DNA of 64,000 nt. Origin: Rebecca billardiae RCC1528. Lineage: Eukaryota; Protista; Haptophyta. Shown here piece by piece: positions 13,701 through 61,000 of the stretch. Numbering within the stretch: the stretch's first letter is position 1; the number at the start of each line of letters is the position of its first letter. The position numbers and the translations under genes were made by a program. The notes beneath the pieces are model-generated. The model was given only the letters and a program-made list of their open reading frames with translations, did no database searches and was not told where the DNA came from. Location of the stretch: positions 930,001 to 994,000 of the forward strand of contig OZ251239.1 in the NCBI GenBank assembly GCA_965240325.2, written 5' to 3'.

Positions 13701-14285
13701 CGCGGGCCTCGCGCCGCAGCTCAGCCTGCTCGTCGCGCCGCTCGGCGGCGCGGCGGACAGCGCGCTCCTCGACGAGATCGCGGACGTGCAGCACGCGGCG
13801 CGCCGGCGCGCGCTCATGCGCATCGCGCCGCGCGTGCGCGCTCGCGAGATGCCGGCGGCAGCGCTCGCGCGCACGCTGCTGCCGCTCGCGGTGGCGTACG
13901 CGTGCGCGGAGGGCGCGGCGTGGGCGGAGGCGGGCGACGAGGCGGCGCGGCTGCTCGGCGCGATCGCCTCCGCGCTGCCCTGGCGCGCCTACGCCGGCCT
14001 CCTGCGCACCCTCCTCGCCCGCGCCGACGATGAGGCCGTGAGCGCCGCGGTGGAGCGACGGCTCTCTCGCGCGCTCGGAAACGTGATCGCGGAGTTCGCG
14101 GCGCCGCACGCGCGCGCGGCCGCGGAGGGCGAGGGCGGCGCCGAGGCGGAGGAGGGCGGCGCGCGCGGCGGTGCGCAGGAGGAGGAGGCGGAGGAGGACG
14201 AGGAGGAGGAGGAGGAGGGGGGCGCGCCCGCCGACGACGGCGCCGCGCCCGCCGCCGCGCCGCGCGCGGGCGCGCCCGCCGCCGC

Positions 14286-14316
<31 letters not shown>

Positions 14317-30902: not shown

Positions 30903-31028
30903 CGCCGCCCCGGGCCGCGTGGACAGGGCTCACGAGTACTGGTAGTAGTACGTATCTGCCCCGGCCCCTTCCAGACGACGGCGAGAAGCCCGAGGAGGTG
31001 GGATCCGCGGCGGATCGCGTTGAATCTA

Positions 31029-31518
31029 GGGAAAACCCCGGAAGTCCGACGAGGACCGACCGAGCAACCAGAACTCCGACAAACCTCCGCATCTCAGCAC
31101 GGCGATTTCCGGACTGGCACCCCCGCCAGTTTTCCGACGGCCAGAAGCTTCGGGAGCGAGCAAATGGCGCCGCTCGCCCGCAACGCGGAAGATACCGCTC
31201 GCGGCGAACCGGCGCGAACGCCCGCCTTGTATTCGGGCGGAGTACCCTAATGAGCGGGGGTGGGCACTTTCGTATTGCGCGCAGCCTGACGCCCACCCGC
31301 GACGAAACGACGCCGTCGACTCCTCCCGCCCGGACCGCCGCCGGAACGTTGCTCGTCAATTAGTTAGAGAAATGCGACGCCGGGGGGCGCGCCGCAAAAC
31401 TTGCTCCCGAGCTCGCCACGAGGGACGATCGATGCCTCGCACGACGTTAAGGGGGTACGCCTGCCACGCGCGCGGGCGTCGTGCGCGCGCCGCGTGGTCG
31501 CGCGCGGCGCATCGCGCG
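31029..31518 (+). repeat. Left TIR of the MULE
   Basis: Reverse complement of 48305-48794, near-identical except for a 13-nt block (31426-31438) and a few substitutions. Confidence 0.93.
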
Positions 31519-34500
31519 CGCGTGTGTCTTCGTTCGCGCGCGCGGCGTGCGCTCGCGCATGTCGTCACGCCGTGCGTTCTGCGTCGTTGCGCGGCGTCGT
31601 GCCCGCGTGCCGCGCGCAGGCCGCCGCCGCCTGCGGGGACGACTCCGACTGCGACGAGCTTCGCGAACGGGGCTGCTGTGGACGTGGTGTACGAGCAGGG
31701 TGCACCGGCAGTCCGTGCTGTGGTCGCGGCGCTTGGGGTCGGCGCACACGGGCGAGTGCAGACGTACGTCCTCCGGGCTGCCGAGGGAGTGTCTGCTCAT
31801 GCGTGGGCTGCGGTCCCTGGCGACACCGTCGGTGCGTCCGCGGATGGAACAGTCGAGGGCGCAGGCTCGTTGAAGAGGGTGCCAGCGGCGCACGTGCGTG
31901 CGCCGCCCGCCGGCGAGCAGTGCGCCGAGCAGGGGCAGGGCGCCGAGCAGGGCGCCGAGCAGGGCGCCCTGCTCGGCGCCCTGCTCGGCGCCGAGCCGGG
32001 CGCCGAGCAGGGCAAGCAGGCCGCCGAGCAGGGCGCCGAGCCGGGCGCCGAGCCGGGCGCCGAGCAGGGCGCCGAGCAGGGCGCCCAGCCGGGCGCCGGG
32101 CAGGGCGCCGGGCAGGGCAAGCAGGCCGCCGAGCAGGGCGCCGAGCCGGGCGCCGAGCAGGGCGCCGAGCAGGGCAAGCAGGGCGCCCAGCCGGGCGCCG
32201 GGCCGGGCGCCGAGCCGGGCGCCGAGCAGGGCAAGCAGGCCGCCGAGCAGGGCGCCGAGCCGGGCGCCGAGCAGGGCGCCGAGCAGGGCGCCCAGCCGGG
32301 CGCCGGGCAGGGCGCCGGGCCGGGCGCCGGGCCGGGCGCCGAGCAGGGCAAGCAGGGCGCCGAGCAGGGCGCCGAGCAGGGCGCCGAGCAGGGCGCCCAG
32401 CCGGGCGCCGGGCATGGCAAGCAGGCCGCCGAGCAGGGCACCGAGCCGGGCGCCGAGCAGGGCGCCGAGCAGGGCGCCCAGCCGGGCGCCGAGCAGGGCG
32501 CCGAGCAGGGCGCCGACGGCCGGCCGGCCCGCCACGGCAGCACGCGCGTGGGCGGCGGCAGCTACGCCGCCCAGGGCATCCAGCAGGAGGCTGCGGGGCA
32601 GCGCGGCGCGCAGGGGGCGGCTCACCACAACGGGCGCGGCGGCGTGCGGACGCGGGCCATGCGCCGCCAGCCGCCACTTGCGCCACCCGCCGAAGCGCTG
32701 CCCGGCGTCACCTCGGCGCCGGCGCCGCCGTCGGCGCCGACGGCGGTCGCAGGCGTCACGGCGGCGCCGGCGGCGCCGCCTGCGGCCGCCGGCGGCCCCG
32801 CGACAAGCGACGAACGCGCCGAGCCGCCACGCGCACCCGTCGCAACGCTGGCGCCGGCGCCGCCGCCGCCGCCGGCGCCGACGGCGGTCGCCGGCGTCAC
32901 GGCGGCGCCGGCGGCGCCGCCTTCGGCCGCCGGCGGCCCCGCGACAAGCGACGAACGCGCCGAGCCGCCACGCGCACCCGTCGAAACGCTGGCGGGTGCC
33001 ACCGGCGTCACCGCGGCGGCGCCGGCGCCGCCGCCTGCGGCCGCCGGCGGCCCCGCGACGCGCGCCGAACGCGCCGAGCCGCCACGCGCACCCGCCGAGG
33101 CGCCGGCGGCTGCCACCGGCGTCACCGCGGCGGCGCCGGCGCCGCCGGCGCCGGCTGCGGCCGCCGACGGCCCCGCGGGCGTCAACTCAGATGACGCCGG
33201 TGGTGCTGCCTCGGGCGAGGTGGCACGGGCGGCGACGGCGTCGACCGCGACGCGCGCCGAACGCGCCGAGCCGCCACGCGCACCCGCCGAGGCGCGGGCG
33301 GCTGCCACCGGCGTCACCGCGGCGGCGCCGGCGCCGCCGGCGCCGGCTGCGGCCGCCGACGGCCCCGCGGGCGTCAACTCAGATGACTCCGGTGGTGCTG
33401 CCTCGGGCGAGGTGGCACGGGCGGCGACGGCGTCGATGGGTGGAGCGGCGGCTGGCGCAGCGGGGTCGCACTCCCATGCACCACAGCAGGCGCCCGCCGC
33501 CGCGCAACCCGGCGGTGGCGGCCACGCTGACGACGGCGGCGGCGTCTACGGCAGCGGCGACGGCGGCTCACGCGAGCTGTTCGCGATGAGCGATGTCTTG
33601 CAGCACGTGGATCATTTCTTCAGCGGCATCTACGGGAAACGCCGGAGGTTCGGCGGAGACACGCCCGCCGCGCCGGCGCAGGCGCACGCGCACGTGCTGG
33701 TGCGCCCCAGCGCGGTGGCGGATGCGGACGCGCGGACGACGAAGCACGGGCCGCAACCGAACAACGGCCGATTGGTGCCGGCCATCCTCAGGTTCAACCG
33801 CGCGTTCGCGTCACGGCATCTCGGCGGCGGCGGCGGCACGGTCCGCGTGGTGAACGTGGTGTGCGATGCCACGAACAACAAGCACTTCGGCGTGCTCACG
33901 GATGCCGACGCTGTGCGCGAGCTGTGCGCCTCGGGCGCCTTGTACACGCGCAGCGAGGTGGACGATGCGGTGCGCGAGTTCTACGCCGGCGCCGCCGCGA
34001 GCGTCGGCGGCTCTGTCTCTGAGCTCGCCCTGCGCGCAGCAGGCGAGCACTTCGGTGTGCACGGCCCGTTGCCCTACGTCCTCGACGCGGACGTGCGAGT
34101 CGCCTTAGCGGACGCTGAGGCCGACGACGATGGCGTCGCAGGCGGCGACGCGCCCTGGGTTCACCGGGCGCTTGCGTTGCCCTCGATGCGGCGCTCGGGA
34201 CAGGCGGTGTTCGGCCTCCCCGCCGTGGTTGCACAGGCGCCCTCCTGGTGCGCGCTTGTGCCCACGCCGCTGCGGGCGCCCGCTGAGCAGGGGACGTCGC
34301 CTTTGCTGCACGCCGCCGTGGCCGTGGTGGACTACCGGTCCGTGGACACCGACGACACCGACGAGTCGGAGCCCGTCGTCGGCGCGCACGCGTACGCCAT
34401 CCGCTTCGAGAAGGGCTGGCGCCTCCTCACCTTCGCCACGCGGCCGCCCAGTGGTGCGGCGGGCGCGATGACGGCTGCGACGTGCACGGACCTCACGGTC

Positions 34501-37071
34501 GACGCCTTCGCCGCCGCCGTCAGCCGGCGTGAGGTTGCTGCGTGCGAGCTGCAGTCAGCGCCGCCGCGGGCCATTGCGCCCCCCGTCCAGCACGCCGCCC
34601 CCGCGCTCCACGACTCGCCGCCCAGCCCGGACGAGACGGACGCGTTGCCGCCCCGCCCGCGCCGGGACGTGGTCCCGACGTCCACGGACGTGCTCATGGG
34701 CGCCTCCGCGGTGTGCAGCGCGCTCGGCATCGGGCCATGCCATTGGGCGCCCGATGGCGACCCGCCCGGGCTCATGACGAACGCCGCGGCCATCGCGGAG
34801 GCGGCGCTCACGTACGTGCAGTCGAACTACGACGTGATTGGGGGCACGGCGGCGTCGGCGGACCTGCTGCACACGCTCCACCAGATCATGGTCGCCGGCC
34901 GCCCGCAGCGCTCGTTTGACAGGCCTCTCCCCCGGCCGGGCGGTGGGACGCGCGTGCGCGTCGCAGGCGTCGTCGGCGAGCTGCCCGTCCATGAACAAGA
35001 GCTGATGCTCGCCTCGAAGCACACGTGCGTCGCGGCGGCCATCGCGTGCGCCTCGGCGCTCGTGCTGCGCGTCAAGGCGGCACACCTGCGATACGACGCC
35101 CTCGCCGACGTCAGCGTGGGCGATGGTGCGTCCTTCGAGGCGGCGGACTACCTCACCAAGGTGCGCATCGTCAGCGCACGGCTCGTCGCGCCCGAGCGGA
35201 AGAAGCGGCTCACCTTCGAGCTCCTCGCCGTCTCCGAGGATAACGCCGGTGCTTACGACCGCGTGCTCAACGCCGACACGAGCTCGCGGGCACTCCACCG
35301 GGACGAGGTGCTCGAGTTCACCTACGTGCCTTCGAAGACGCGCTCGTGGAAGTCGACGGAGGCGCTGTCAACGCACAGCCGCGCGGCGGCCGGCGACGAC
35401 GCCGACGCCGGCAACTTCGGCACGCTGTTCTTCGTCCCGCACATGCGCGACCCCGTGAAGGCAGCCGCCCTGGCGCGCCCGCCGCCTGCCGGGACGCCAC
35501 CTGCCGCGCCGCCCGTGGGTGCGATTGTGGACTTTCGCCCCTTGTGCATCAGCGTGTGGGCTGACATCGTCCCGTTCTGCCAGGATCGGCTCTGGACGCA
35601 CCCGGCGGACCCAGTCACCGGCAAAAGCAGCGGCGTGGACGCGCCGAAGATGTACGCCGCCGCGCTCCACAGGCGCGCGCCCTCGCTGGCGCGGCACGTA
35701 CAGGCGGCGCCAGCGCGCAAGCGTCGCCTGAACGAACGCGGCGCCGACGCGGGCGGCGCGGGCGGCGCCGCCGGTGGGCGTGTGGTGGCGCGCCGGCCGG
35801 TCGGCGACCCGGGCCGCGTCGCCGTCACACGGCCATCCGCCGTCGCGCGCGCACCCGGGCCACCCGAACAGGCGACGCGCATGTGCACCGAGCTCGCTGC
35901 GGCCCACGCCCAGCTCGCTGAGATGGTGCACGGCATCCCCAACGCAATGGCACAAGCGATCGGACAACTCGCTGCGAACGACGCCAAGCGCCAGAAGGAC
36001 TACGAGGCCTGGCGCGCGGCGGACGACGAGCGGCGCCGGCAGGAGCGCGCGGCGGACGAGGCCTGGCGCCAGCAGGAGCGCGCGGAGGCGGCGCGCCGAC
36101 GCGACGAGGATCGCGCGGCCGCAATGAAACGTGACGAGATCGCGAGCGCGATGGTGGCGTCTATGCAGGCGTTGACGCAGTTCATGATGGACCGCAGCGC
36201 AGGTGGCGCACAGCCCGGCCCGCACGCGTCGGCGCACGCGGCGTGCGTCCAGCTGCCAACAGGCGAAGCACCGCACGGCGCGCACGCCCCGGCTGCGGGC
36301 CCGTCGGTGAGCGCTGCGTCCGCTGCGCCCACGTCGCGCGCACCCACGGCACGGCGTGGCGCGCCGCCGCCGGTCGCATTCGGCCAGCGCGCGCGGCGCC
36401 GAGTGCCGCCCCCTGACTCGCGTGTGCCCGCCAGGCCGCTGCACTGTCGCTCCGTGCGCCGGCCGCGCAGGCCGACGAAGCCCCCGCGGGCCAGCCCCCG
36501 CCGGCCGCGCAGTAGACGCCGACCCACAAGGGCGCGTCCTGACGTGCCCACGCGCCGCCCACAGGTGCGCGCACACACCACATCGGGCGGCGCCAGCCGT
36601 GCGCACGCCGAGCGGCGTGTACGCGCAGCCCTGGCTCAGTCGCGCCCGACCGCCCCCGTGCGCGCGCGCGCGTCGCGGTGGCGTGCACAGGCTGCGCGCC
36701 ACCCGGGGCGGCCACGCGGGTGGCCGCCACCGCTGGCAGCATCTGGCCACGAGCTCGGCACCCGGGGTGCCGGCGGAGTGGCTCGTCGGAATCGCCGTGG
36801 CCTGAGCCCGGTTCTCCGAGCACACGGCCACAGGCACCCCCCCGGCCAGCGCCTCTGCGCCACTCGCAGTGACGGCGCCACAAGGGCCTACGGCGGGGCC
36901 CGCCGAGAAGGTCTTAGCGCAGGTCTTAGCGGGATGCAAGCAGCGCCACGCGCGACAACACTGATACACGCCGCCGGGGGCCCACACTGTGCCGGCCCGT
37001 GCTATGTCGTCGTCAGCTCGGACGCAGGCCGGCCGGCCGGTGCCGTGAGTCGGCGCCTGTCGTTCTGTTAG
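31372..37071 (+). CDS. MULE accessory gene (mudrB-position ORF) of unknown function; true start and 3' exon structure uncertain
   Basis: 1899-codon ORF starting inside the left TIR. (GAEQ)n and Ala/Pro repeats, globular coding-like segments at 33580-35700 and a coiled coil at ~35880-36190. The first ~80 and last ~230 codons look intron-like. Confidence 0.65.
31915..32515 (+). repeat. 12-bp coding minisatellite (gagcagggcgcc/gagccgggcgcc)n, ~50 units
   Basis: Seen directly; encodes [15 protein letters not shown] units. Followed by ~126-bp and ~192-bp tandem duplications at 32700-33435. Confidence 0.9.
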
Positions 37072-40000
37072 CTGGCACCTGGCGTGCTCAGGCGGCGTGG
37101 TGCGCACTCAACGTACCCCTGCAAGGGTGATGTAGCTCGCATGAAGTGCGCCAGACGCCCCTCGTTGTTGTCGCGCGCCGAACGCGCCTCCAGGGGCGCC
37201 GTCGCCGACACCACCGCGCCGAAGTGGCAACGGCCGTCGTACACCACGGCCATCCACGTCGTGCCCAACTGCGTGACGTCCAGACGCTGCAAGGCGCGCC
37301 GCGTGCGCTCGTCACGCAGGCGCAGGTGCGCATGCGTGCTCACGGCGACGCTGCCCTTGCGCCCGCCGTCGTCAGTCCGCCGCCAGCGAAGGCCCGGCCG
37401 CGTCTGCACGGGGTACAACCAGACGTTGTCGGTGAACGCGCGCCACGCCGCCTCCTCCGGCGTAGCCCCGCCGCGCAGCTCAAGGACCACCAGCGGCAGG
37501 CCCGTGGCGCGCGCCGTCGCGACGTGCGAGCCCCACGCCGACCACGCACCAGCGCGCGCCGCATGCGCGCCAGCGCCGTCGCCCGTGTACCGGGCGCCGC
37601 GCGCGTACGCGCGCGCCGCTGCTCCCAGCGTCCGCACGCCTCCAGTATGTCGCAGTGGCAGTGGCAGCACCTCCTGCCAGTCCTCGTCCTGCACTTCGAG
37701 TCCTTGGCCGGTGCGGGCCCGGGGGATGGATGCTGGCTTGACGCCAAGCATGCCGAGCGCGCTTGCCGCCGACGCCGTGGCCGACGCCGTGCCGAGCGTC
37801 TCGCCCGGTCCGTGCTCGTCCTCCCACGACGCGATGTACGAGCACACGCCGTCGCGCAGCGTCTGCGCGCGCGCGTTGGCGGCGGGCAGGTCGGCCCGCA
37901 CGCCACGCGTGTCGTGCGCGAGCCACGCGTGAAAGTAGCAGTCGCCATCGCCGGGAACGTCCTGCACGCTCGTGCCGCCGCCGAAGAGCTCGCGGATGGC
38001 CGCGGCGACGTTGCCGTCGCCATCCACGCCGCCGGGTGCTCCGGTCTGTGCACCAGCCCGCGCCTCGGGCGGCAACGCCGGCGGCAGGGGCAGCACGGGG
38101 AAGCCCAGGCGCTCGAGCAGGACCGCGGCGTCGTCCACCGGCGCGTGCACGTGTGCGGCGGCCGCCGGAGCCACCGCAGCCGGCGCAGCCCCGTGCCCGG
38201 CGGGCGCCGGCGCCGCCGCACCCGCGTCCACGGTGGCGTCCGTCGCCGCCGCGGCGCGCGGCGCGGCTGCGCCGCGTGGCGCGGCATCACCCGCCGTCAC
38301 GTCAGCGCGGCATCGCTCCGCCGTCACGTCAGCGGCGGTCTCGCCCAAGGCCAGGCGCAGCCCCAAGCCCACGTCGCACCGCCATGCCCCGTCGGAGCCG
38401 TCGAGAGGGACCACCTCGGTGCCGAACGCGCTCGGGTCCAGCGCATCCACCTCGCACCCGCGCCGCCTGGACGCCAGCCTCACGTGCGCGTCCGCAGCCG
38501 GCTGGAACGCACTCCAGCGCGACGCCGGCAACACCCCGTGCGCGCGCGGGGTGGCCTGCGGCGCAACCACTGCGTAGAACTGCCGGCGAGGACACACGTT
38601 GCGCACGATGGCCACCCAGCCGGTGCCCATCGCCCCGACGTCGAGCGTGCGCAGGACGCGTGCGTGCGTCTCGCGTCCCAGGCTCAGGCGCGCTTCGCAC
38701 AGCGGACGTGCGTCCGCGTGCGCGGCGCCTGCGTCGGGCGTGTCGGCGCGCCGGCGCTTCGCGCCGGCGCCCCCGCGAGCGCGTGGCGCCGCCGGCGCCG
38801 GCGGCACGCGCACTGCCGTCGGAGGATACCACCGCACGTGCTCACGCATGGCGACGCCGTGCACGTCGCGAGCTCGGCGTGCGTAGGCCATGTCGAAGAC
38901 GAGGAGGTGCACGCCGGCGGCGCGAGCGACTGCCGCGTACCACTCAGGGCCATCGCACGTGTTGCCCGGGCTGCTGACGTACCCGTCGCACGTGTACTCC
39001 GCCGCTCGCACTGCCAGCGTCACTGCGTCGTCCAGATCGCGCACGCCCTGGCCGGGGGTGTGCCACGACGACGAGTCGTCGGGGGCCACCATGCGCAGAG
39101 CCCGCAAACGCGCCTGCCCAGCTTCGTCGCCACCTGCGCTCTCCGGGGGAAGTGCGCGCACGTCAGCGCCGCACAAGCCGATGAAGCGCGCCTGCGCTCG
39201 CAGGTCCTCTGCCGACTCGGCCGGGCCCAGCGCGCCACCCCAGCCGACGGAGTGCTCGGTGGGCGTGGCATGCGCGTGCGCGGCCAGCCACGACGCGGCC
39301 GCCGCGCGCAGGCGCCGCGCGCAGCACGCCCACCACAGGGCCTCAAGCGTGCTGGGCGGACGCGCCCGCGCGTGCGCGTGCGCGAGCACCGCGTGCAGCA
39401 CGTCGTCACCGTCGGCTGGCACGGGCAACGGCTGTGCGGCGCCCGCGCCCCAGAGGTCGTCGAGCACTGCCTGGGCGCAGCAGAGCCGTAATCGGGCGAA
39501 TTCGGCGTCGTGGTCGTCTGCGCCGGCGGCGGCGTCGGCGGCGTGGAACAGGCGCACCGGCGCGTGGCGGTCATCGCCCGCGGCGCGCGCTCCAGCGTCG
39601 CGCACCGGCAGACCAGTGCGCGCCAAGTGGGCGACCGCGTCGTCCGCGGTGGCGACGGCTGTGTCGTCCGCGGCACCAGACGTGCCACGCGCCGTCCCCA
39701 GCAGGTCGGCGCCTGCGCGCGTTGGGCCCGGCGTCGGCACCGACCGCGCCGCCGACGATGGCCCCGCCGTGGACGCGCGGGCGCCCGCCGCCTGGCGCGA
39801 AGCCGGCGGCAGGCGCCCATCCGCGGCCGCACCGCCCGCGTCGTCGGCGGCGGCCGCAGTCCGAGGGCGCTTGGGCGCGCACGGCGCAGACGCGGCCCCC
39901 GCGCCCGCGCGGGAGGTGCCAGCCGCGGCGCCCGCCTGGCCTGCGGCGCCTGCGCCCGCGCCGCCGCCGCCAGCCAGGACGTCCGCCAGGCCCGCCGCCG

Positions 40001-43000
40001 CCGCCGCGACGTCGTGTGCGCCTGCGTGCGCCCACACGTGGGAGGCCGCGTTCGGAGCGGCGCCGCCCGAGCCCCTCGCGCCGCCACTGCCCTCGGCGGG
40101 CACGGCGGGCGACGCGTGCGCGCGCGCCAGCTCGGCGGGGGCGGCGGCGGCGCGCGCAAACTGTGCCAGCACCTTGCCCGTCGTCGCGCTGGACGCGCCG
40201 AATGCGTCACCGGCCGTCTCGCTGAGCGTGGGCCACGGTGCTGACAGGCCGCGACTGCACATGAACATGGCTGCCCTGCCCCGACCGATGCCAGGTATGC
40301 GCCGCAACGCCGCGAGCACTGCGGCGCTGTCGTCAGCGAGGCGCGCGTACGCCGACTCGGACTCCGCCGCCTCCGCCGGTGGCTCTGCCGCGCCCGCGCG
40401 CGCCCGAGGGACTCGCGCACCCGGTGGCGGTGGCGCGTGGGCGCCGGGCCACGGGGGGCGGAAGGGATGCTCAGTCGCCGCCAGCGGTACTGTGTCGCCC
40501 GTGGCCGGCAGCGGCTCCGCGGCGTGCGCGCGCGCGCGCGCGGCGGGCGTCGTGCCGGCGTCCGCGCCACTGCGCGGGCCCGTCGTGCCCTCAGGCGGTG
40601 CGGCCGGCCGCTGCGTGGCGGCGTTTGGCATCGGTGCCGTCGCGAAGCCCATGCGTACGCCGGTGCCGCCAAGTGCCTGCGAGGCGATCGCGCGCGCGCA
40701 GTGCCGGCGCGGGCCGCCGCGCGCGCCCGCGCCCGCCGCGGCGGCGCCGTCGCGCGTCTGGGCGGCCGCCGGCTGCGCGCGCCCGGGCGCGGGCGCCGCC
40801 GCGCCGCGGCCCCCGCGGCCGCCTGCGCGGCCCCCGCGCGCGCCTGCGGTGCGCGCGGGGTCGCCGCGCGCGGCCCCACCGCCGTGCTGTCCGCGCATAC
40901 GGTGGTATGGCACGTCCTCCGGCCTCGCGCCGCGCGGCCCGTCGGGCGCCGCCGCCTCGCCCGCCGCGGCTGCGCGCGCTTCGCGCAGGCGCTTCCACGC
41001 CCCCGCGACGAGCAGGAAGTAGCAGCACGTGCACATGTACAGCCCGCTGTCCAGCGCGCCGAGGTGCCACACATACTTGCACTGCGCGGGCGAGTGGATG
41101 AAGCAGGCGCAGCCCTGGCACGCCAGTCGGGGGTCGATCGGCGGCGAGTCCGCCGGCCACGCCGCGCTGAGGTCCGCGGCCTCGGGGTCGAAACACGCGC
41201 AGCAGCGCAGTTGCGCGGCGGCGGTCGTGCCGGCCGTGTACGTGGCAAAGTGGCGACGTCGCTGGTTCGCAACCACACCCTCGCGGAGCGGGCCGGCCAC
41301 GCGCACGAGCACGTTAGTGTCGTCGAGCACGTGCGTGTGCGCGATGCCGTACAGGTGCTCCGGCAGCCCCTCGAGCACACGCGCGAGCTCGTCGCGGTGC
41401 GCTTCGCGCACGCGCCGGGCGAAGTCGCCGTCCGGGGCTTGCTCCCTCAAGGGGCGCACGTACGACGCCGCGGATTTGCCCAACTGCACGCGCGGCGCGC
41501 GCGCGCGCGGTGCGCGCGGGTGGCGCGCCCCGGCGCGGCCCTCCCAGAACGCCAGCCGTCGCGCCGAGGACGCGGGCCTGCCCACGCGCGCGGGCACCGC
41601 TGGCATGGCCACGTACTTTTCGAGCAGGGCGCGCTTGGCGAGAGCGGGCAGCAGCAGAGCCGCAATGGCGTCCTCCAGGCGCTGGGGCGGTGTGATGACG
41701 TCGAGCTTGGTGATGGCCACGACGCGCCCGAGCGTGTCCACCCGGGTGTCGTGTGCGTCGCGCTCGACCCGAAGGCCCACCTGCGCGAACCACGTCTCGC
41801 AGCGCAGGTCCTGGGGCAAGCACGTGCCCATGGCACGGCCGACGGAGGTCGCCACGCGGCAGAAGTGCATGCACGGCAGGCGCTTGCGGCGCAGCAACGC
41901 GCAGCACCGGAACTCGTCGAGGTACACGTGGCGCGGCGCCGAGCCGTCCGTGGTGTTGAGCATGCGCAGGGCACCTGCGTGCGGCCCGTCGAGGACACGG
42001 TGCACTTCCACCTGAGAGAGCGTGCGCGCCGTGCTCACCTGCTGGCGCACGTATTCCAGGTGCCGTGGCGGCAACCCGTGCACCTCATCATCGGCGTCGG
42101 GCTTCAGGGCGTGGCGCACGGCGACGCTGCGGTGCGTCGCGTAGAGGCGAAAGAGGTTGTCGTGCAGGTCGAGCAGCATCCACACCGGGCCCTGCGCCTT
42201 GCGCACCGGCAGCAGCCAGTGCATGAAGGACTCCGCCGGCGCGGACGTCACGTAGCCGCGCAGGGACACCGGCGCGAAGCACGGGAAGAGCTCCTCGCGG
42301 GGGATGACGTCGAGGATGCGCTTGGCCGACTCTGGCATCTCCACCCAGGCGGCCTCCCACACCTCCTCGGTCAACGCGTCCACGCACGCGTCGAACACGC
42401 GCAGGATGGTGGGCACCTCGTTCGCCGAGTGTGCGTAGCCCGTGATGAAGGTCTGGCGCTTGTGGAACGTGCACAGGAAGAGGTGCCTGCGCGGGCACAG
42501 CAGCTTCCACGCGCCGCGCAGGCCCTTCTGGCCGTCCGAGATGGTGACGCCGTTGGGGTCGTCCCACACAGCCGCCCCGCCGAGGTGCTGCATGAGGTAT
42601 CCGACGTGCGCGCACCACGAGTCCAGGCACTCCACGTCGACGATGTACGACACGCACAAGACGAACAGCTGCCGGTTGGCGTTCACGGCCAGCGTGACGA
42701 AGAGCATGCCTGCGTCGCGCGCGTGCGTGCGCGCGGGCAGGTCAGACGGGCGGGCGCTGAGGCGGCACGGACGCACGCGGCGTCGCGAGGGCGTGCCCGG
42801 GTGCGGCGGGCGCGCGCACCCGCGCGCTTCGCGCCACCGCTGGCGGGGCGGTGCAGGAAGCACGCGTCGCTGAACGCGGCCGTGTTGCCCTTCGCGTGAA
42901 AGTGCTCGCGGTAAAGCGCCTTGGCCTGCTTGGGCACGTAGTGGAAGCCACCCACTGCCTTCTTGCCGCGCACGTCAGCCAGCGCCTTCTGCACCTCCGC

Positions 43001-46000
43001 CGCGTCGGGGTTGAAGGCCGCGCGCTGCGCGCCCGCCGGCAGCCCCTGCTGCACCTCGTCGTGCACGCGGCCGAACATGGCCAGCAGCGCGTCCTCGACC
43101 GAGTTCTCGTGGAAGATGATGGGCGCGACCTCGTTGCCCTCCTGCGACAGCGACGCGCACACTGCCACGAGGTCGCGCGACATGGCCGTGTCGTCCCCGT
43201 AGATCTCGGCGCGCGCTTCTTTGTGCGCTCGCGCGATGAGCGATTCACCCATGGGGAGCTCTGCGTCCAGCTGGCGCGCGACCTCTCGTGCTTGCTGCGG
43301 GCCGTAGCACAGCTGCGCGTGCGTGGTCCCGCGCCGGGCCAAGCGCGCCTTCCAGTCCTCGACGATCGCCCGCCCGAGCTCGTGTTGGGAGTACGGCGTC
43401 GTGCGCACGCCCGGCTGGTTGGTCGGGCGCGGCAGCGAGCCGATGGGGTGTTCCTCGGACCCCTTGCCCATGCGCAGGTTGCGGCACATGGAGCCGTGCG
43501 CGACCGAGCGTTGCACGGCCCACGGCGGCGCGCCAAACGTGTCCACGTACTTCGACGGGCCCACCACCACCACGGACGGGCACCCGGGCGTGGGGCATCC
43601 GATCGTCAGCTTGGCGCGGTCGACGCGCCGCGTCGGCGGCATGGCCCCCCGGTGCAGCGCGCACTCCGAGGCGTGCGTGAGCGCGTCGGCGAGGCGCGGG
43701 TACACCTGGCGCACCATCGGGGGCTCGAGCAGGGTGGCGTCCGCCTTCACCTGGGAGTACGGGCGCGGCGCCCGCAAGCCCATTTTCCTCCACAGTGCCA
43801 GGGGCCGGAGCTCGAGGCGGTGCGCTGCCGCCGACGTGCTCGCCGAGGTGCTCGACGGCGCGGAGTAGCGGAAGTACCCGGCGTCACCGCCGTGGTGCAG
43901 CGACTCCGGCGCAACAAGCCGGGCGCCGGCCTGGCCGGCGCGGGGCTCGGCGGGACCGGTGGAGGGCGGCTGCGCGCGAGCGACGATGGGTGGACACGGC
44001 ATGAGGGCAGCCAGCGGGTCGCGCGCGCGAGCGGCGTCGCTGTCGGCGGACTCGTCCGCCTGCAGTGCCGCCTGCGCCGCGCGCGCGCGGGCGTCCGCGC
44101 AGTCGTCGTCCGCGATGCCCTCCTCCCAGTCGCGCACGTCGATGGCGGCACTGGCGGGATCGGCGTCCGTGACGAGCGGCTCGCCGCGGGCGTCGGACTC
44201 GCCGACGCGCATCGTCGGCCAGTCCGCGCTCAGGGCGAACAGCGGCGCGTTGCCGCGGGCGGCCGCCGTCGTGTGCGTCCTATGGCCCACGGACGCGTCG
44301 ACGAGGGGCACTCCACCGCGCGCCCATGCGGGCGCCGACTTCTCCGTCGCCAACGCGTCGGCAAGGTGGCCACCGAGGTGGGCACGCTGGCCGGCGTGCA
44401 GGGCCAGGGCGAGGTCCCCGCCGGACAAGAGGCCACCTGCGTGCGGCAGCGCAGGGAGGGCCCTCAGCCGCGCGTCGTCGTCGTCATTGCCGCCGTCGCC
44501 ACCGGAGGCGCCGCGCGGCTGCGGCGGCGCGCGCGAGGCGCAGCCGGGCGGCTGCGCGATCACCGCGCGCGCGCTGCTGCTGTCGAGGGGCGGCCCCGCC
44601 GGGTGGAGTGGCGGGCGCGCCGTCGCGGCGCACACAGCAGCGCCGGGCACCGTCACCGCGACGCAGGGCACGGCGTCGCCCGCAGCGCAGGGTGCGCCCG
44701 GCGCTGGCGTTGCCACGCGAGCGGGCGAAGAGTGCCCATCGCCAGGCCGCGGCGACGCGGGCTCGTGCGCGCCCGGCGCGTCCGAGCTCGAGCTTTGGCG
44801 GGCGCCGGTGTGCCGCAGCGGGGCGGACGCTGCGTCGGGGCGACGCACGGCCGTGGGCGCGCGCGGCCCGACAGCCGGGTCGTCAACGCCATCGGCGCGT
44901 GGGGGCCGCGCGCCCTCGTCAAAGGGGGCGCCCACGTGCGCGCCCGTGCCGTGCGCGGCCGCGGCGGTGGGCGCGCGCCCACCGCCGTCGGCGTGAGGCG
45001 CGGGGTGGCCGCCCGCAAGCCCCACGACGTGGGGCACGGCAGGCGCCGCTGCGCGCTCATGTGCGAGCTGCGCGCCGTCGGCAGCGCACACGGGCAGCGC
45101 CAGCTGCAGCGCCGACTGCGCCCAGGCCCGCTGCTCGTGGTCCGACGGCGCCTGCTGGCCGTGCGCCGCGGTCGGCAGGTCGACCACCAGGCGGGAGACG
45201 TACTCGTGGTGCGCAGGCGAGCCGAGCCGGAAGCGGGCGTCAGCGCCAGCGCGCGTGGGCTCAGCCCCCCAGCGCAGCCTGGTCTCAAACGAGTGCTGGA
45301 GCCCGCGCTCGAGGGCGGGCACGAGCCGATACGGCGTGGGAGGCGGGTCGGAGCGCGCCGCGCACGGCGTGGCGGCGGGGCGAGGCGCGCTCGGCGGCGG
45401 CGTGAACGAAGCGCGGAATGTGTCCGCGAGGCCCCGCCCCCCGAATGAGAACACAGCCTTCAGGACGAGCGCGTCCGCCGCACCCTGACGCGTAGGCCTC
45501 TTGCGCGAGGACGACGGCACGGACCCCGAGGACGCGGCGCGCGCACTGGGGGCCGAGCGGTGATGCCACATGGCGGGGAAGATGTGCACTGCACCTGCGC
45601 TTTCCTGCAGGGCAACGTCGCCGTGCAGCGGCACGGCGTCGGCGCGCGCACCGGGGGGGCGCGCGCCGACCGTCTGCAGCGGGAAGGGATTGGTGGGCAC
45701 ACTTTGCGGCAAGTGCAAGAGGACCACTGCCGTCCACAGATGGTCCTCGTCGGTCGTGCCGTCGACGTGCCACCCGTACGTCGTGACGTCGCCGTCGTCG
45801 CACGTGCCGCGGCCCCCGTCGGGCGGACGCATCGGCCGCCCGAAGACATGCCAGGCCGTGAGGTCGAGCGCGTCGAGGCCGCGGACACCGTCAGAGGCGT
45901 CGCCGCGGAACAACGAGCTCACGACGCCCTTCAGCGCCGCCACCACGCGCTCAAAGGCGCGGCACCCCAGCACCGAGCGCGCAGAGGAGCCGTGGTCGCC

Positions 46001-47974
46001 CACCCCCCAGCGCCGCTGCGCGGCCGCCTCGCCGCCCGCGTCCGCGGACTGGTACGCGTGCACCGTGCGCAGGAGGCCGCCACCCTCATCCAGCAAGGGC
46101 ATGGACGCATCGCCGTCCCCGCCGAGGCCTGCGTGCTGCAGCACGTACTCGCGCAACGGGCCAACCAGCACGCCCATGTCCATGTCCAAACGCTGCGGTG
46201 CCGCAGCGGCGGCACCAAACGCGGCCTGCAGCGCGCGCCCAACCGCGGTGTTATGCGCGAGCATGTCGTCGAGGCTGGGCGCGGGCGCCGCCGCAGGCGT
46301 CGGCGCCAGCGCGTCGCCCAGCGGCGGCTCGCCTGCAGGCGGCAGCGCGCGCGGCACCACCACGGCGGAGGCAGGGCGCATCGCGCCCGACGCCGCGCTC
46401 GTCACCTCGTCGCGCCACGGCGCAGCGGCGCCCACGACAGCGTGCGCACCGCACAGCGTCAGCACCAGCGTCACTGGCGGCTGCGAGACGGCCGCGCCGG
46501 CCACGAGGGCCTGCGCGAAGGTGGCGTCGAGCAAGGGGTGCAGACGCGCGCCCTCGCCGACGTGCACCAGCGCGGGCGCGAGCGGGATGACCACTGCCCA
46601 CACGGTGCGCTCGGCGATGGTGGAGGCGGCCCGCAGCAACGGCCGCGCCAGCCACCCTTCGCGCAGCGAGCCGTCCTCGCACGCGGCCACAAAGGCCGCA
46701 AGACCGGCGTGGCCGTCGGCGACCACGGCAGCACGCAGCCTGACGGCGGCTGCGCGCACGGCGGCGTCACGTCCAGCGGCGGCGCCGGACGTGGCAGCGC
46801 GCGGCGCTCCATCTGCCGCCACCCCTTCGCCGGCCCCCACGACGGCCTGCGAGACGGCGCCGAGCCACGCCAAGCGGGCGCTCTCGAGTTCCGCACGCAG
46901 CTGCTGGTCGCGCCAGCGTGCCTGCTCAGCCGACGCGGGAACGAACGCGCGCGGCTGCGCCGGCACGGGCGCGCAGAGCGCGCGTACGGCAGCGTACGCC
47001 TGCGTGCGCAGCTCCGCCGCTCGCGCACGCAGCGCGTCCGCGCAGAGGCTGCTGCGGCCTGCTGGCCACGACGCCACGCGCTCGAAGGCGACGAACAGAG
47101 GCTCGGACTGGCCAGCGTCCGCGCCGAAGACGGCGCGCGCGTAGTACATCACCGCCTCGGACGGGCATGACAGCGGCGGGCACGGGGGGGGCGCGCCCGT
47201 CCAAGCGCCCGACGGCGCCGCCGCCGCCGCCGTCGTCGCCGGGAGCACGTCGTCGACGCCTCCGCCAGTCCCAGCACCTGGGCGGGCATCCGGACGGGGG
47301 GCGCACAACGCCGCCAGAGCCAGCTTCGTCCGGAACGGAGCGGCGGCCCAGGCCGCACGCACTGCCCACGCGCATGCGCCCTGCGCGTGCTCAGCGGCGC
47401 GTGCGTGCTGCCCTGGGGTCGGCGCCGAGGACGACGGCGACAGCGACTCCGCGCCACCCGAGCGGCGCGCGTGGGACGTGCCTGCGGGCGGCGGCGCCGG
47501 TTTCCCTCCGAGCGCCGCTGCGGACGCCGTCAGTCGCGCCGTCTCCGCGAAACTGCCCTCCTCCGCCAGAGCCCCGTCGGCGGAAGCACCACAGGCAGCG
47601 CGCACGGCGATCTGCGCGACGGCCCTGAACCAAAGGGCCGCCGCGCACACGCGCGCCACCGAGTCCGCGCGCTCACGCAGCGCGTCCGGGTGCGAAGCCA
47701 ACAACTCCGCACACTCCACCACAGTGAGCAGCGCGTCGGCGCCGCTGCCACCCCATACGCGCGGCACTGTGACCTGCGCGGCGGCGGCGCCAAGGCCCAC
47801 GTCGGTGCTGTGGACCACGCCGAGGGTGCACAGCACCAGACCAAAGGTGAACGTCCACGGGGCTGCTGCCGAGGAGAACTGCAGCGTGCACAACGCGTCG
47901 TCAGCCGCTGCGATCACCGCGTCCACGAGCAGCAGGTCGTCCTGACTGCTGGGGCCGGCGGACACATGCCGCAT
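37068..47974 (-). CDS. Multidomain MULE transposase, ~3598 aa if only intron 42819-42710 is spliced: 2OG-Fe(II) oxygenase, MuDR Zn finger, DDE, SWIM, PHD, HhH, degenerate OTU, OTU
   Basis: A 110-nt GTGCGC..CGCAG intron joins the two ORFs in frame: FSDACFL..AG|MLFVTLAVNAN..ISDGQKGL..CTFH..TSAPAESF. Also CPTPGC..HGSMC, RCC..LPCMH, CCAC..CQGCACFIH..C..CTCC, IPGIG, VPGDGDCYF..CHF and WHVD..HHRS. Confidence 0.85.
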
Positions 47975-48304
47975 GCCCGCCTGCGCGGTACGTGCCAGCA
48001 CGTGCGGCGGAGAGGCAAACGCAGGCGCGCGCGAGCACACACACGGGGCACATCGTCAGACAGGGGACGGGGGCGCATGGGAGTGGTGCGGTGTGCGCGC
48101 GCGCGGCGGCGCACGCCACCAACATCGCTGCCGACCACACACACCCGCCCCGGCCCACCGCGACCTCGCACCATTCACGAATCACGAGTGCGACTTGCCT
48201 GCTCGTCGCGGCCGGCGACCGTCGACGCCTCAGACCGACTCGGATGCGAGAAGGGGGAACTCCTGCGAGGGGAGGCCGCAGGGAACAAGAACGGTCGGTG
48301 CGTG

Positions 48305-48794
48305 TGCGCGATGCGCCGCGCGCGACCGCGCGGCGCGCGCACGACGCCCGCGCGCGTGGAAGGCGTACCCCCTTAACGTCGTGCTCACGCCCAGCCCTCC
48401 CTCGTGGCGAGCTCGGGAGCAAGTTTTGCGGCGCGCCCCCCGGCGTCGCATTTCTCTAACTAATTGACGAGCAACGTTCCGGCGGCGGTCCGGGCGGGAG
48501 GAGTCGACGGCGTCGTTTCGTCGCGGGTGGGCGTCAGGCTGCGCGCAATACGAAAGTGCCCACCCCCGCTCATTAGGGTACTCCGCCCGAATACAAGGCG
48601 GGCGTTCGCGCCGGTTCGCCGCGAGCGGTATCTTCCGCGTTGCGGGCGAGCGGCGCCATTTGCTCGCTCCCGAAGCTTCTGGCCGTCGGAAAACTGGCGG
48701 GGGTGCCAGTCCGGAAATCGCCGTGCTGAGATGCGGAGGTTTGTCGGAGTTCTGGTTGCTCGGTCGGTCCTCGTCGGACTTCCGGAGGATTCCC
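48305..48794 (-). repeat. Right TIR of the MULE
   Basis: Reverse complement of 31029-31518. Confidence 0.93.
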
Positions 48795-49206
48795 TTGAAT
48801 CTATCCGCGCTTTTCGTGGACGCGGTTCGCCTCGCACACCTCGCGGGAACCGTTCAGGCTCACTTTTGTGGTTGCGCCCCACTCATGAGTGAGTAAGACG
48901 TGTTCCTCAGAGGCTTCTCATGATCCACTTAGATCACTTTAGATGCAGTTCGTCAGCTATCGGGTACAAGTGTTATTACCTACCGTATGAATTGAGCTGC
49001 TGGGCGAGACTTTGGCGTTACTTACATGTCGAGTCAAGATGCAACTTGGAGACTGCATGCATGCGCGGGTGATCCCTAGACTGATAGTGACGGCTTTGTA
49101 ACGACGCAGGACTTTGCTCCTAGAGGACGCACGACCGGTCCAAGGGCGGGAAATTTTCGGAGGCATGTTCCGTTGACCGGGCCCACCGGAGCGCTCGCGG
49201 CGATCA

Positions 49207-53398: not shown

Positions 53399-55217
53399 GA
53401 ATTTCATCAGCATCGTCTTGCTCGTGGCGTAGTCACGATCTTGAAGGTCGTCGGGTACAGTCATGCCACTCCATGGCTAGTGAGAGCGCATGGCATCGTG
53501 AGCAGCAGTCGCGGGCTGCTACGTATTGTAACGAAATCTCGCCTGCCTGAGCTGTGTGCGTCTCTTATGACTTATTCTTAGACCTAGTAAACTGTGTGTG
53601 CGATGACGATGGCGCGGCAACCTGCCACCGTGAGCCTTACGCACGTTAAGGTTGTCCTGGGAATCCGGACGCCGCCCGCCGAACCGTTCGAACAGCATGG
53701 CGCCGCCGCCCGGCGCACGCGCAAGGACACGCCGCAGGAGGACCTGGGCGTGATATGCCGCGATTTCGCGCGCGAGGCGGTGCGCGTGAGGAGCATGCGC
53801 ACCGGAGGAGACCTCACAGACGCGCGCGACATGGACAACGACTGCGCAAGGCATCTGAGTTGATGACCGAGGCCGAGAAGTGCCGGAGCCATCAACGACA
53901 ACGACAAGTGGATCAAGCAGGCGAACACCACCATCAAGCACGAGCGAGAGGTCATTCGGGATGTCGGCAAGCTTCGTACAGCATATCTCGAAGGCGCCGC
54001 CGCACGCCTCGCGCGCTGTGCCAAGTGCAGCCGCATGGCTGAGGCTCCCGAGGGGCTGCGCTCGCTTGCCGTCCCGTGACGGAGGGCACGACATCGACAC
54101 GGGCGGGCTCAACACCGCCAACCGCCCGCCGGGGCAGGCCGACGAGACCCAGAAGCATGCGTTGTACTCATCGGACGCGCTCGGCGCACTCTCAGGTCGT
54201 GTTGGGCGCCCATGCGCGCGCGCGTGCTGCTACGAGCACCACGACAAGCCCAAGCGTGCACTCGGCGGCATGCGCGTGAGCCCTGTAGCTCCGTCAGACG
54301 CCCGTGACATGGTGTCACGGACGTGCTCGCCGCAAACAATTGCAACGAAACCCGGGCGCGGACGGGCTCCCGGGTCCGAAATTTGGACGGAAGTTGGATA
54401 TATTAGGACCCACATTTCCTAAAATTGGGCCATATTGGGCTGTTACTTAACAGATATTCGCATTTAATTTTATGTCCGACTTCCGTCCAAATTTCGGACC
54501 CCGGAGCCCGTCCGCGCCCGGGTTTCGTTGCAATTGTTTGCGGCGAGCACGTCCGTGACACCATGTCACGGGCGTCTGACGGAGCTACAGGGCTCACGCG
54601 CATGCCGCCGAGTGCACGCTTGGGCTTGTCGTGGTGCTCGTAGCAGCACGCGCGCGCGCGTGGGCGCCCAACACGACCTGAGAGTGCGCCGAGCGCGTCC
54701 GATGAGTACAACGCATGCTTCTGGGTCTCGTCGGCCTGCCCCGGCGGGCGGTTGGCGGTGTTGAGCCCGCCCGTATCGATGTCGTGCCCTCCGTCGTGGG
54801 ACGACGCAAGCGAGCACAGCCCCTCGGGAGCCTCAGCCATGCGGCTGCACTTGGCACAGCGCGCGAGGCGTGCGGCGGCGCCTTCGAGATATGCTGTACG
54901 AAGCTTGCCGACATCCCGAATGACCTCTCGCTCGTGCTTGATGGTGGTGTTCGCCTGCTTGATCCACTTGTCGTTGTCGTTGATGGCTCCGGCACTTCTC
55001 GGCCTCGGTCATCAACTCAGATGCCTTGCGCAGGTCGTTGTCCATGTCGCGCGCGTCTGTGAGGTCTCCTCCGGTGCGCATGCTCCTCGCGCGCACCGCC
55101 TCGCGCGCGAAATCGCGGCATATCACGCCCAGGTCCTCCTGCGGCGTGTCCTTGCGCGTGCGCCGGGCGGCGGCGCCATGCTGTTCGAACGGTTCGGCGG
55201 GCGGCGTCCGGATTCCC

Positions 55218-58038: not shown

Positions 58039-61000
58039 TATTGGGATTACCGCAAGCTCCGAGCGTCTCGAGCCCTGCTAAAAGCTCACCGCGCACGACA
58101 GGACGGACGCCACCGCGAGGATCACATGCCTCGCGATCTCATCAGCTCTCAAGCCTCTGAACCTGGCCCTTATTTCCGGCGCTCTTGCGCCGGGCCAAAA
58201 CAGCGATCGAGCTCCGATCGCTCCTGGGCTCGGGGCGGTAGTATCATCGCCGTGCCGACTTACCCAGATTTTGCCGCGATCAGCCAATCGGCGATCGCAC
58301 CGTCCGTCCTGTTGCCGCTCAACTTTGTACCACTGCTTCTCGTCCATGTCCGGTGCTGCTCACCTGCTTTCCTTGGACAAATCCAGTGTACCAGCATGAC
58401 GCCCGCGCTGCTCCGCGCTGCTCCGCGCTGCTCCGCGCTGCTCCGCGCTGCTCCGCGCTGCTCCGCGCTGCTCCGCGCTGCTTTGCGCTGCTCCGCGCTG
58501 CTCCGCGCTGCTCCGCGCTGCTCCGCGCTGCTCCGCGCTGCTCCGCGCTGCTCCGCGCGCTCCGCGCTGCTCCGCGCGCCCCGCGCTGCTCCGCGCTCCC
58601 GCGCCGCTGCGCCCGCGCTGCTCCGCGCCCGCGCCGCTGCGCCCGCGCTGCTCCGCGCTCGCGCGTCTGCTGCCGCGCGCGTCCTGGACGCGCGCGCTGC
58701 CAGCCACTGCTCCGCAGCAGCTGCTGCCGCCGGCCCGCCTGATGCGGCGCCAGCCCTGACACCCCAGCGGCAACGCCATCTGCTGAGATGCGTGCCCCAG
58801 ACTGTGCCAGTTCATCCGCACTGCTGCTCTGCAGCAGCTGCGCCGCCGGTCTGCCTGCTGCAGCACCGGCCCTGACTCACCGCCGGCGACGCCATCTGCT
58901 GAGATGCGCGCCCCTGGCCTCGTCAGCTCAACACCCCCCCTCGACAGCCATAGCCGCGAGCGAGTAGCACCGCTCATCGCGCGCGCGTCGGGTGTCGCAC
59001 ACCATGATGGCGTCGACGTGCCACTCAAACGTAGCAGCGTCGTCCGTCGCCTTCGTCATGATGTCGGCGTGGTACATTGACCTCACGCCACGTACTCCGC
59101 CTCCGTCGAGCTCAGCTGGGCCATAACCTGCAGCCCGCTGCTGTGCCACGACACCGGCGATCCATTGTAGAAGACAATGATGCAGCCACCCGTCGACCTC
59201 CACCCGGATTCCCCTGGGTTGTTAGACCAAACAGAGTCACCCAAAGTGAGCAAGTCGTCGAGCTCGTCAATCTCCGCGCGCTGGACCAACGCCTTGTCCG
59301 CGTCGGTCAGCCTCGCGCGCGCCGCTGCCTCTGGCAGCCGTATCCGCGTGCTCGCGTTCGTGCCGAATCGCTCGAGCCCGCCATCGATCGCCTCTGCGAC
59401 CCGCGGCAACCCGCCCGCATCTGCGCGGCGGTCCCGCGCCAAAGTTGCGCCGGTGGTATATCATACCACCAGTGCGACTGCGCCCATGGCGCGCCCGCAC
59501 CGCCCCGATCGCCGGCCTGCGGCATCGGCGGCTGTGCGCCCGTGCGCCCGCGCTGCTGCGCCCGCGCTGACCCGCGCCCGCGCTGCTGCGCCCGCGCACC
59601 TGTGCTACGCGGCGGCCCGCCAGCATCTGCTGCGGCCCCGCGCCGGGATTCCGTCGGCGGGATCCGACCCTGCCGACCCAGGCTGTGTCGCTGACGCGCC
59701 TGCTCCGCCACGCCCGCCCTGCGGCGTCGGCGTCGACGGCTGTGCGCACGCGCTGCTGCGCCCGCGCGCTGTTCCGCGCCTGCGCTGCCGCGCCCGTGCG
59801 CTGTTCCGCACCTGCGCTGCCGCGCCTGCGCGCTCCGCGCCCGCGCTGCTGCGCTCGCGCGCTGTTCCGCGCCCGCGCTGCTGCGCCCGCGCGCTGTTCC
59901 GCGCCCGCGCTGCCGCGCCCGCGCGCTGTTCCGCGTCCGCGCTGCCGCGCTCGCGCGCCGACGCCGACGCATCTGCGTCGCCGTCGTTCCTGACGTCGAA
60001 CTCCGTCGCGTCGTCGTCACCGGCGTCGGCCGGCGGCTCGCCGCCGTCGCCGTCATCGTCCTGCGCCGCGCGGCGGCCCGCCAGCATCTGCTGCGGCCCC
60101 GCGCCGTGATTCCGCCGGCGGTATCTGACCCTGCCGACCCGGCTGCGTCATCGACGCGCCTGTCCCGCCACGCCCGCCCTGCGGCGTCGGCGTCGACGGC
60201 TGTGCGCCCGCGCTGCTGCACCCGCGCTGTCCCGCGTCCACGCTGCTGCGCCCGCGCCCCGACGTTGACGCATCTGCGTCGTCGTCGTACCCGACGTCGA
60301 ACTCTGTCGCGTCGTCATTCCCGGCGTCGGCTGGCTGCTCGCCGCAGTCGCCGTCATCCGCGCCCGCGCTGCTGCACCCGCGCTGTCCCGCGTCCACGCT
60401 GCTGCGCCCGCGCCCCGACGTTGACGCATCTGCGTCGTCGTCGTACCCGACGTCGAACTCTGTCGCGTCGTCATTCCCGGCGTCGGCTGGCTGCTCGCCG
60501 CCGTCGCCGTCCTCGTCCTCACCGTCGGCGTCACCGCCGACCGGACGATGTCCGCCGCTTACCGCGGCGCCGTCACCATCACCCACGTACGCGCCACCGT
60601 CAGGTGCGCCCAGCGACGAGTGCCCCCCCTCGACCAGGTCGGTCTCGTCGATGCGTACGTCACGCAAGTGAAGAGACGTCCGTCGTCTACACGACATACG
60701 TACCAGAGTACGTTGAAGCCACGGAGCTGCTCCGCGCGCGGCGCGCGCTGATCGCCGCCGCCGCTGCCTCCTCCGCCCTCGCAGCCAGTCGGTATCTCTC
60801 CGCCGTCTTGGCCGCCGCCACGATCCCCGCCGTCGCCACCGCCGCCTGAGCCAGGCGATGAGCTTCGTGCGTGGACGTGTGGGTGCCGCCGCCACCACCG
60901 GGCGTACGACCACCTGGTTCGGTGCGCCCAGCGCCGCCGAGCCACTGCCGCGCGCTGCTGCGCGCACACACGCCGCACCGGCGTCCTGCGCCGTGCGTGT

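Follow-up and report, generated by a model that had tools for sequence, protein, structure and literature searches.

A candidate prolyl-hydroxylase-like 2-oxoglutarate/Fe(II) oxygenase domain in the transposase frame of an intact Mutator transposon from the haptophyte Rebecca billardiae

Introduction

Mobile DNA fights host silencing, and transposons that bring chromatin or epigenetic enzymes of their own show how it does so. Some plant Mutator-like elements (MULEs) carry a Ulp1 protease. TET/JBP dioxygenase genes have been described in fungal DNA transposons of the Kyakuja-Dileera-Zisupton (KDZ) and other groups (PMC12730594); the same paper also cites the anti-silencing factors of plant VANDAL elements, and SET-domain MuDR (Phytophthora) and Harbinger elements. 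Here we analyse 64,000 nucleotides of the genome of the haptophyte Rebecca billardiae RCC1528 (contig OZ251239.1, positions 930,001-994,000, forward strand; this whole stretch, numbered from its first nucleotide, is called the window), in which an intact Mutator-type element carries, in the frame of its transposase, a candidate domain of the 2-oxoglutarate/Fe(II)-dependent (2OG-Fe(II)) oxygenase superfamily. A literature search found no report of an oxygenase domain in Mutator elements.

The described enzymes that most resemble this segment are the PKHD hydroxylases YbiX and PiuC and the prolyl 4-hydroxylases (P4Hs; PF13640, PF25238). Characterised members of the P4H/PKHD branch hydroxylate proteins, and the collagen-type prolyl 4-hydroxylases use a lysine, not an arginine, as 2-oxoglutarate ligand.

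Results

The oxygenase-like motifs share one minus-strand frame

An earlier note on this DNA had proposed, from four short strings, a 2OG-Fe(II) dioxygenase domain upstream of the MULE transposase core. The strings are real: all four lie in a single minus-strand frame, stop-free and with coding-type codon bias, within a long open reading frame (ORF A, 48040-42683). They are TTYGWHVD (residues 753-760, window 45784-45761), LWTAVVLL (residues 768-775), AGAVHIFPAMWHHRS (residues 815-829, window 45598-45554, containing H826 and H827) and VLKAVFSF (residues 859-866, window 45466-45443). They share this ORF with a zinc finger (residues 1482-1518), as the note had also stated, and with the motif FSDACFLH (residues 1723-1730), which lie about 600 and 960 residues further downstream, respectively. 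The parts of the candidate domain are as follows.

45443-45880, minus strand: oxygenase-like core, residues 721-866, candidate double-stranded beta-helix (motifs, ESM-Atlas neighbours, MAFFT, hhalign, block test, composition)
45761-45769, minus strand: H758-V-D760, candidate Fe(II) ligands in TYGWHVDG (7/8 match to YbiX; H and D in columns that PiuC and YbiX keep invariant)
45560-45562, minus strand: H827, candidate distal Fe(II) ligand, with H826 as alternative (the family's invariant His in MAFFT and hhalign)
45635-45700, minus strand: insertion of about 22 residues (781-802), rich in Pro, Gly, Arg and Ala, after the LLHLPQS strand (gap in every family row, YbiX and PiuC)
45473-45547, minus strand: second insertion, about 23-25 residues (~832-856) rich in Ser and Arg, which separates LVLKAVFSF from the distal-His strand (sequence reading; includes R834)
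45458-45460, minus strand: K861, candidate ligand of the 2-oxoglutarate C5 carboxylate at the start of the last strand (by-eye resemblance)

H758 and H827 are 69 residues apart, the corresponding distance being 62 in YbiX and 71 in human collagen prolyl 4-hydroxylase (H412 and H483; PMC2767507). R834 stands at +7 from H827, and hhalign pairs it with the Arg of 'TRG' in YbiX. When the segment is read by eye, eight strand-like hydrophobic stretches may be matched to the eight strands that make up a double-stranded beta-helix, and K-A-V-F-S-F seems to resemble R-V-A-S-F-M-W of YbiX and R-V-A-V-T-W of PiuC, a likeness seen by eye and not aligned by a tool.

Similarity to the P4H/PKHD branch

An ESM-Atlas feature search with the segment gave a recognition value of 2598 and a top score of 0.92, to be read with the tool's own statement that 4-10% of shuffled proteins attain a first-match score of at least 0.9. 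The named neighbours were nearly all PF13640 (2OG-FeII_Oxy_3), P4H-alpha-like or PF25238 (OGFOD2-like) proteins, and the best of them came from haptophytes and diatoms. Residues 290-585 of the same ORF, a stretch just as long, served as control; their recognition value was 1762 and their top score 0.80, with no 2OG family among the neighbours. Because this control recovered no oxygenase family, the signal is specific to the segment and not an artefact of composition.

Family comparisons were seeded, for PF13640, with Escherichia coli YbiX and PiuC of phage P-SSM2, to which relatives of PiuC were added. In a MAFFT alignment of the core with PiuC and YbiX, the invariant columns were Y755, H758, D760, G816, P822 and H827; the HxD...H facial triad of the superfamily is thus present in the right order, in the right columns and in the right local contexts. 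BLASTP against YbiX returned TYGWHVDG/TYGFHVDG, with 7 of 8 residues identical (E=0.012, single comparison). A YbiX-family alignment of 12 members was built from plasmid records, and in hhalign 31 of its columns paired with the segment around the distal His, where G, P, H, P and R coincided (P=0.006, probability 6%); with PiuC alone the same distal-His motif was found (P=0.14).

Profile scores were then compared with those of composition-preserving shuffles. In full-sequence HMMER comparisons the real score was reached by 3 of 3000 shuffles with the PiuC plus YbiX profile, by 41 of 3000 with PiuC and by 17 of 3000 with the YbiX family. A block test used the three most informative 12-column blocks, picked by family information alone. 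With the YbiX family, a post hoc choice, the three colinear blocks fell at DGDVTTYGWHVD, PLHGDVALQESA and GAVHIFPAMWHH and scored 22.8 bits, which none of 2000 shuffles reached (maximum 20.8; z=4.4). When 624 stop-free tiles, drawn from all six window frames, were put to the same test, the domain ranked first and the next unrelated tile scored 14.3 bits. Four 10-column blocks of the YbiX family were equalled by 5 of 2000 shuffles, and the PiuC-profile block tests by 23 and 64 of 2000. The motif match therefore appears to exceed chance, and by these comparisons the similarity to the P4H/PKHD branch is specific and modestly significant.

AlkB and TET/JBP profiles give no comparable signal

The earlier note had leaned towards an enzyme that demethylates nucleic acids, of the TET/JBP or AlkB kind. 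An AlkB-family profile was built, as negative control and as test of the branch; TET/JBP (PF12851) was judged by Pfam and by the Atlas, without a purpose-built profile. The sole hhalign match to AlkB lay outside the catalytic motifs (P=0.04). The real AlkB score was equalled or exceeded by 153 and 143 of 1500 shuffles in the block tests (p ~0.1) and by 354 of 3000 in HMMER, which is chance level. Since this negative control scored at chance, the block test does not merely reward composition. Pfam Tet_JBP and AlkB-type models gave no match at E up to 10, and neither family was found among the ESM-Atlas neighbours.

These results do not bear out the demethylase leaning: a TET/JBP or AlkB-type nucleic-acid oxidase was rejected as a candidate, on the chance-level AlkB scores and the lack of a TET/JBP signal. 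The YbiX and PiuC profiles scored above chance, the AlkB profile did not, and the Atlas pointed to PF13640 and PF25238; the segment is thus closer to P4H/PKHD than to the other 2OG branches. As far as sequence comparison can tell, the positive signals all lead to the prolyl-hydroxylase/PKHD group (PF13640, OGFOD2-like). Because all the similarity is to this branch, a protein substrate is likelier than methylated bases.

Codon bias and composition of the frame

GC content in the window ranges from 62 to 84%, and the length of an ORF proves little by itself, because DNA of 77% GC has long ORFs in all frames, as is seen here. Along the entire ORF A, GC content at third codon positions (GC3, 0.83-0.96) exceeded that at first positions (GC1), which exceeded that at second positions (GC2). 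In the domain region GC1 was 0.75, GC2 0.56 and GC3 0.87, with no stop, and the other five frames had 1-4 stops each. On the codon-position GC and the stop counts, the idea that the ORF is a high-GC artefact was rejected for this frame.

Within the first 1400 residues, residues 721-840 have the lowest content of Ala, Gly, Pro, Arg and Ser (0.32 together), the most aromatic residues (0.15) and the highest entropy; they are a compositional island of globular type. Low-complexity loop expansions occur throughout ORF A.

The element and its transposase gene

The element that carries this frame, and its parts, are listed below. TSD stands for target-site duplication and TIR for terminal inverted repeat.

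31029-48794, minus strand: entire Mutator-type element, 17,766 bp (TIRs 99% complementary, perfect 9-bp TSD)
31020-31028, no strand: left TSD, TTGAATCTA (same 9-mer at 48795-48803)
48795-48803, no strand: right TSD, TTGAATCTA (same 9-mer at 31020-31028)
31029-31522, no strand: left TIR, about 490 nt (inverted pairs I1 and I10)
48301-48794, no strand: right TIR, about 490 nt (inverted pairs I1 and I10)
48040-42683, minus strand: ORF A, 1785 codons (ORF listing)
42863-37068, minus strand: ORF B, 1931 codons (ORF listing)
42820-48040, minus strand: first exon of the long transposase gene, comprising ORF A up to the putative donor (ORF; GC3 > GC1 > GC2 over its full length; first in-frame ATG at 47974)
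42710-42819, minus strand: putative GT-AG intron of 110 nt, phase 1, from ORF A to ORF B (sequence reading)
37068-42709, minus strand: exon 2, with the MULE core, a SWIM-like motif, a long low-complexity region and an OTU-like motif (Pfam and motif reading)
43487-43597, minus strand: zinc finger C-x4-C...H-x3-C, residues 1482-1518 (sequence)
~42462-42713, minus strand: MULE catalytic core (Pfam PF10551, sub-threshold)
41859-41906, minus strand: Cys/His SWIM-like motif (motif reading)
37926-37949, minus strand: OTU-like cysteine-protease motif DGDCYFHA, ORF B residues 1639-1646, towards the C-terminus (motif reading)
31372-37071, plus strand: second ORF of the element, in convergent orientation, 1899 codons, rich in repeats (no family match)

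With a 9-bp TSD, where Mutator/MULE elements have 9-11 bp, and long TIRs, the segment 31029-48794 has the hallmarks of an intact Mutator/MULE transposon. The insertion is recent, since the TSD is perfect and the TIRs are 99% complementary. A search for a paralogue of the domain elsewhere in the 64-kb window found none, and a metagenome locus scan with the MULE core found no relatives.

PF10551 gave a sub-threshold match to residues 51-134 of ORF B (E=0.025; 15.4 bits where the cut-off is 27.6); the D...D motifs and the Cys/His finger of the transposase are discernible by eye. The putative intron has the donor G|GTGCGC and the acceptor ACGCAG|GC, and its removal would restore the frame (...AKRA, a Gly codon, then MLFVTLAVNAN). 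Such a splice would fuse ORF A in frame with the MULE core of ORF B, in a product of about 3,600 residues. The zinc finger is likely the WRKY/GCM1-type DNA-binding domain of the transposase; MULE transposases with fingers of this type have been described (PMC1702500). From its motif, the transposase probably also carries an OTU-type protease, with no Pfam match of ORF B to the OTU family at E up to 10.

The convergent ORF contains repeats of 12-nt period at 31841-32500 (Ala-Glu-Gln-Gly-type) and repeats of 141-192 nt at 32714-33436.

Other repeats in the window

Outside the element, two arrays of a 126-bp tandem repeat (1412-2971 and 26471-29795) lie about 24 kb apart and are 60-82% alike within and between arrays (D2, D5, D9). 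Ten kilobases at 8000-18000 have 81-84% GC, compared with 62-70% in their flanks, and contain periodic repeats of 9-15 nt of GCC/GCG/GAC type (D3, D4, D7, D8). A foldback-like structure of about 1.5 kb at 53659-55217 is a nested near-perfect palindrome, with arms of 184, 228 and 333 nt that are 98-100% complementary and a centre of 68 nt (I2-I4). Finally, 58039-58647 and 62044-62705 are a direct duplication with a spacing of 4005 bp, 100% identical over at least 300 nt; both copies are followed by 10-nt and 16-nt tandem arrays (D6, D12, D14, D19).

Discussion

We lean, with no great confidence, towards the reading that residues ~721-866 form a highly diverged Fe(II)/2-oxoglutarate oxygenase of the P4H/PKHD (PF13640-like) branch, with loop insertions, and that it is a protein hydroxylase and not a base demethylase. 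Within a very long Mutator transposase, the module would occupy part of the accessory N-terminal half. H758, D760 and H827 would hold Fe(II), and either K861 or R834 would hold the distal carboxylate of 2-oxoglutarate. The predicted reaction is the hydroxylation of a protein side chain, most likely of proline, and the target may be a host factor or the Pro-rich linkers of the transposase itself. The module would be an accessory enzyme delivered in cis with the Mutator transposase, probably with an OTU-type protease alongside.

A number of observations weigh against this oxygenase reading. Pfam, searched with the complete ORFs and with three sub-segments, had nothing relevant at E up to 10, and nor did NCBIfam or PHROGs. 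phmmer with the 296-residue region against 1.84 billion cluster representatives returned 0 matches at E up to 0.001, with no self-match; word-index protein searches were blank with the E limit at 0.01 and again at 10; phmmer against the PDB gave irrelevant weak matches only; tblastn against phage genomes gave no match, and metagenome locus scans with the domain found no relatives. The structure prediction that the earlier note had called for did not give a confident fold in either direction: AlphaFold2 reached a pLDDT of 33.1 from the single sequence, and of 38.6 with a borrowed cyanophage PiuC alignment, where it drew two short strands only, TYGWHVD and TAVVL. The latter run is a threading exercise and not an independent test. 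The note had counted the lack of a predicted beta-helix as refuting the domain; this does not apply here, because AlphaFold2 predicted nothing confidently.

The alignments have weak points of the same bearing. The hhalign probabilities were merely 0.4-6%, with one motif covered at a time, and the GGEL-type strand of the family was matched poorly. The p-values obtained with the YbiX family are optimistic, as this family was picked after the similarity had been noticed; PiuC, the a-priori family, gives p ~0.01-0.03. The family's usual basic residue, some 10 positions past the distal His, is absent, position +10 after H827 being Ser; K861 stands at +34, and its reading as ligand requires an insertion of 23 residues. 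The basic residue would be missing at +10 because this insertion separates the distal-His strand from LVLKAVFSF. The Lys that the earlier note saw where Arg is usual is normal in collagen-type P4Hs, but its distance from the distal His is not. A search of sequencing runs found only low-coverage DNA contigs, probably of the source sample and without diverged copies, and no RNA run containing this stretch.

How far do these points favour another explanation? The domain may derive from a P4H/PKHD enzyme and be an inactive relic, or a structural or binding module, in which the insertions and the displaced 2-oxoglutarate ligand destroyed catalysis. The two large low-complexity insertions within the core, the lack of Arg or Lys at the canonical +10, a divergence so extreme that profiles miss the domain, and the failure of AlphaFold2 to fold it even when given a family alignment are all what such decay would leave. 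The insertions are a plausible reason for the failure of profile HMMs and of AlphaFold2, and they fit a decayed domain equally well. All three metal ligands, however, are kept in their correct local contexts, the element has near-identical TIRs and its frame here is open, with codon bias, and low-complexity expansions pervade the whole ORF, so that they are no mark of decay by themselves; we consider a relic unlikely. We give about the same low credence to the explanation that there is no oxygenase domain at all, and that HxD...H is a chance resemblance in an unrelated, possibly disordered part of a GC-rich ORF. It would account for the blank standard homology searches, the lack of a predicted structure, the hhalign probabilities of at most 6%, HMMER p-values of merely 0.001-0.014 and an Atlas score that some shuffled proteins also reach. 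It does not sit well with Atlas neighbours that belong to the exact superfamily predicted independently from the motifs, when the same-ORF control had none, nor with three colinear, correctly spaced blocks that beat 2000 shuffles and all natural decoys; the AlkB profile at chance level and the globular-type compositional island also speak against it. The domain proposed in the earlier note is thus the best reading of the Atlas, MAFFT, hhalign and block results, and the profile comparison that the note had suggested placed YbiX and PiuC above chance, but curated profiles and AlphaFold2 do not prove it.

A TET/JBP- or AlkB-type oxidase that removes methyl marks from the DNA or RNA of the element would make biological sense for a transposon, as an anti-silencing function, and DNA transposons carrying TET/JBP genes are documented in fungi (PMC12730594). 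Against it stand the AlkB block and HMMER scores, the hhalign match that misses the catalytic motifs, the silent Tet_JBP and AlkB-type models, the composition of the Atlas neighbourhood, and the fact that all positive similarity is to the P4H/PKHD branch; it is very improbable. Beyond the oxygenase reading that we prefer, one may speculate that an active prolyl-hydroxylase-type oxygenase and an OTU-type deubiquitinase together rewrite hydroxylation and ubiquitin marks, either on the transposase or on host machinery for silencing or degradation. This would protect the element by a counter-defence at the protein level, unlike the DNA-level TET/JBP strategy of fungal transposons, and we regard it as a long shot.

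Compared with YbiX, PiuC and the P4Hs, the segment has a nearly identical iron motif (TYG[FW]HVDG, YbiX), a next hydrophobic strand that ends in PQS in both, a common distal-His segment (aG-x3-[YF]P-x4-H-x3-P), a His-to-His spacing of 69 against 62-71, and, if K861 is so read, a basic residue that opens the last strand, where collagen-type P4Hs have Lys; its language-model neighbours belong to these families. It differs in that no profile matches it significantly, that two insertions of about 22-25 residues interrupt it and that +10 lacks a basic residue. R111, D113 and the GGEL strand, invariant in YbiX, are not conserved here, and there is no PKHD_C domain. The known enzymes are also free proteins of 200-550 residues, whereas the present module would be one part of a protein of about 3,600 residues.

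As in the fungal TET/JBP transposons, a eukaryotic cut-and-paste DNA transposon appears to carry cargo of the 2OG-Fe(II) superfamily. The branch differs, being P4H/PKHD-like with a protein, not 5-methylcytosine, as likely substrate, and so does the host element, which is Mutator and not KDZ, with the module in the transposase frame and not in a neighbouring gene. With other Mutator/MuDR elements that have accessory functions, this one shares the 9-bp TSD, the long TIRs and coding capacity that extends beyond the DDE transposase to enzymes that could act on host proteins or chromatin, a candidate here; its size of 17.8 kb and the putative fusion of about 3,600 residues are unusual. If the domain is a relic or a chance resemblance, the element remains a well-preserved giant Mutator, otherwise ordinary. 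In conclusion, these comparisons suggest that the element belongs to a kind already described, in which a transposase brings accessory enzymes along, and that P4H-type cargo would be new for a Mutator element. If the oxygenase reading is right, a class of protein-modifying enzymes joins the list of TET/JBP, SET and VANDAL functions, in the little-studied mobile elements of haptophyte-type algae.

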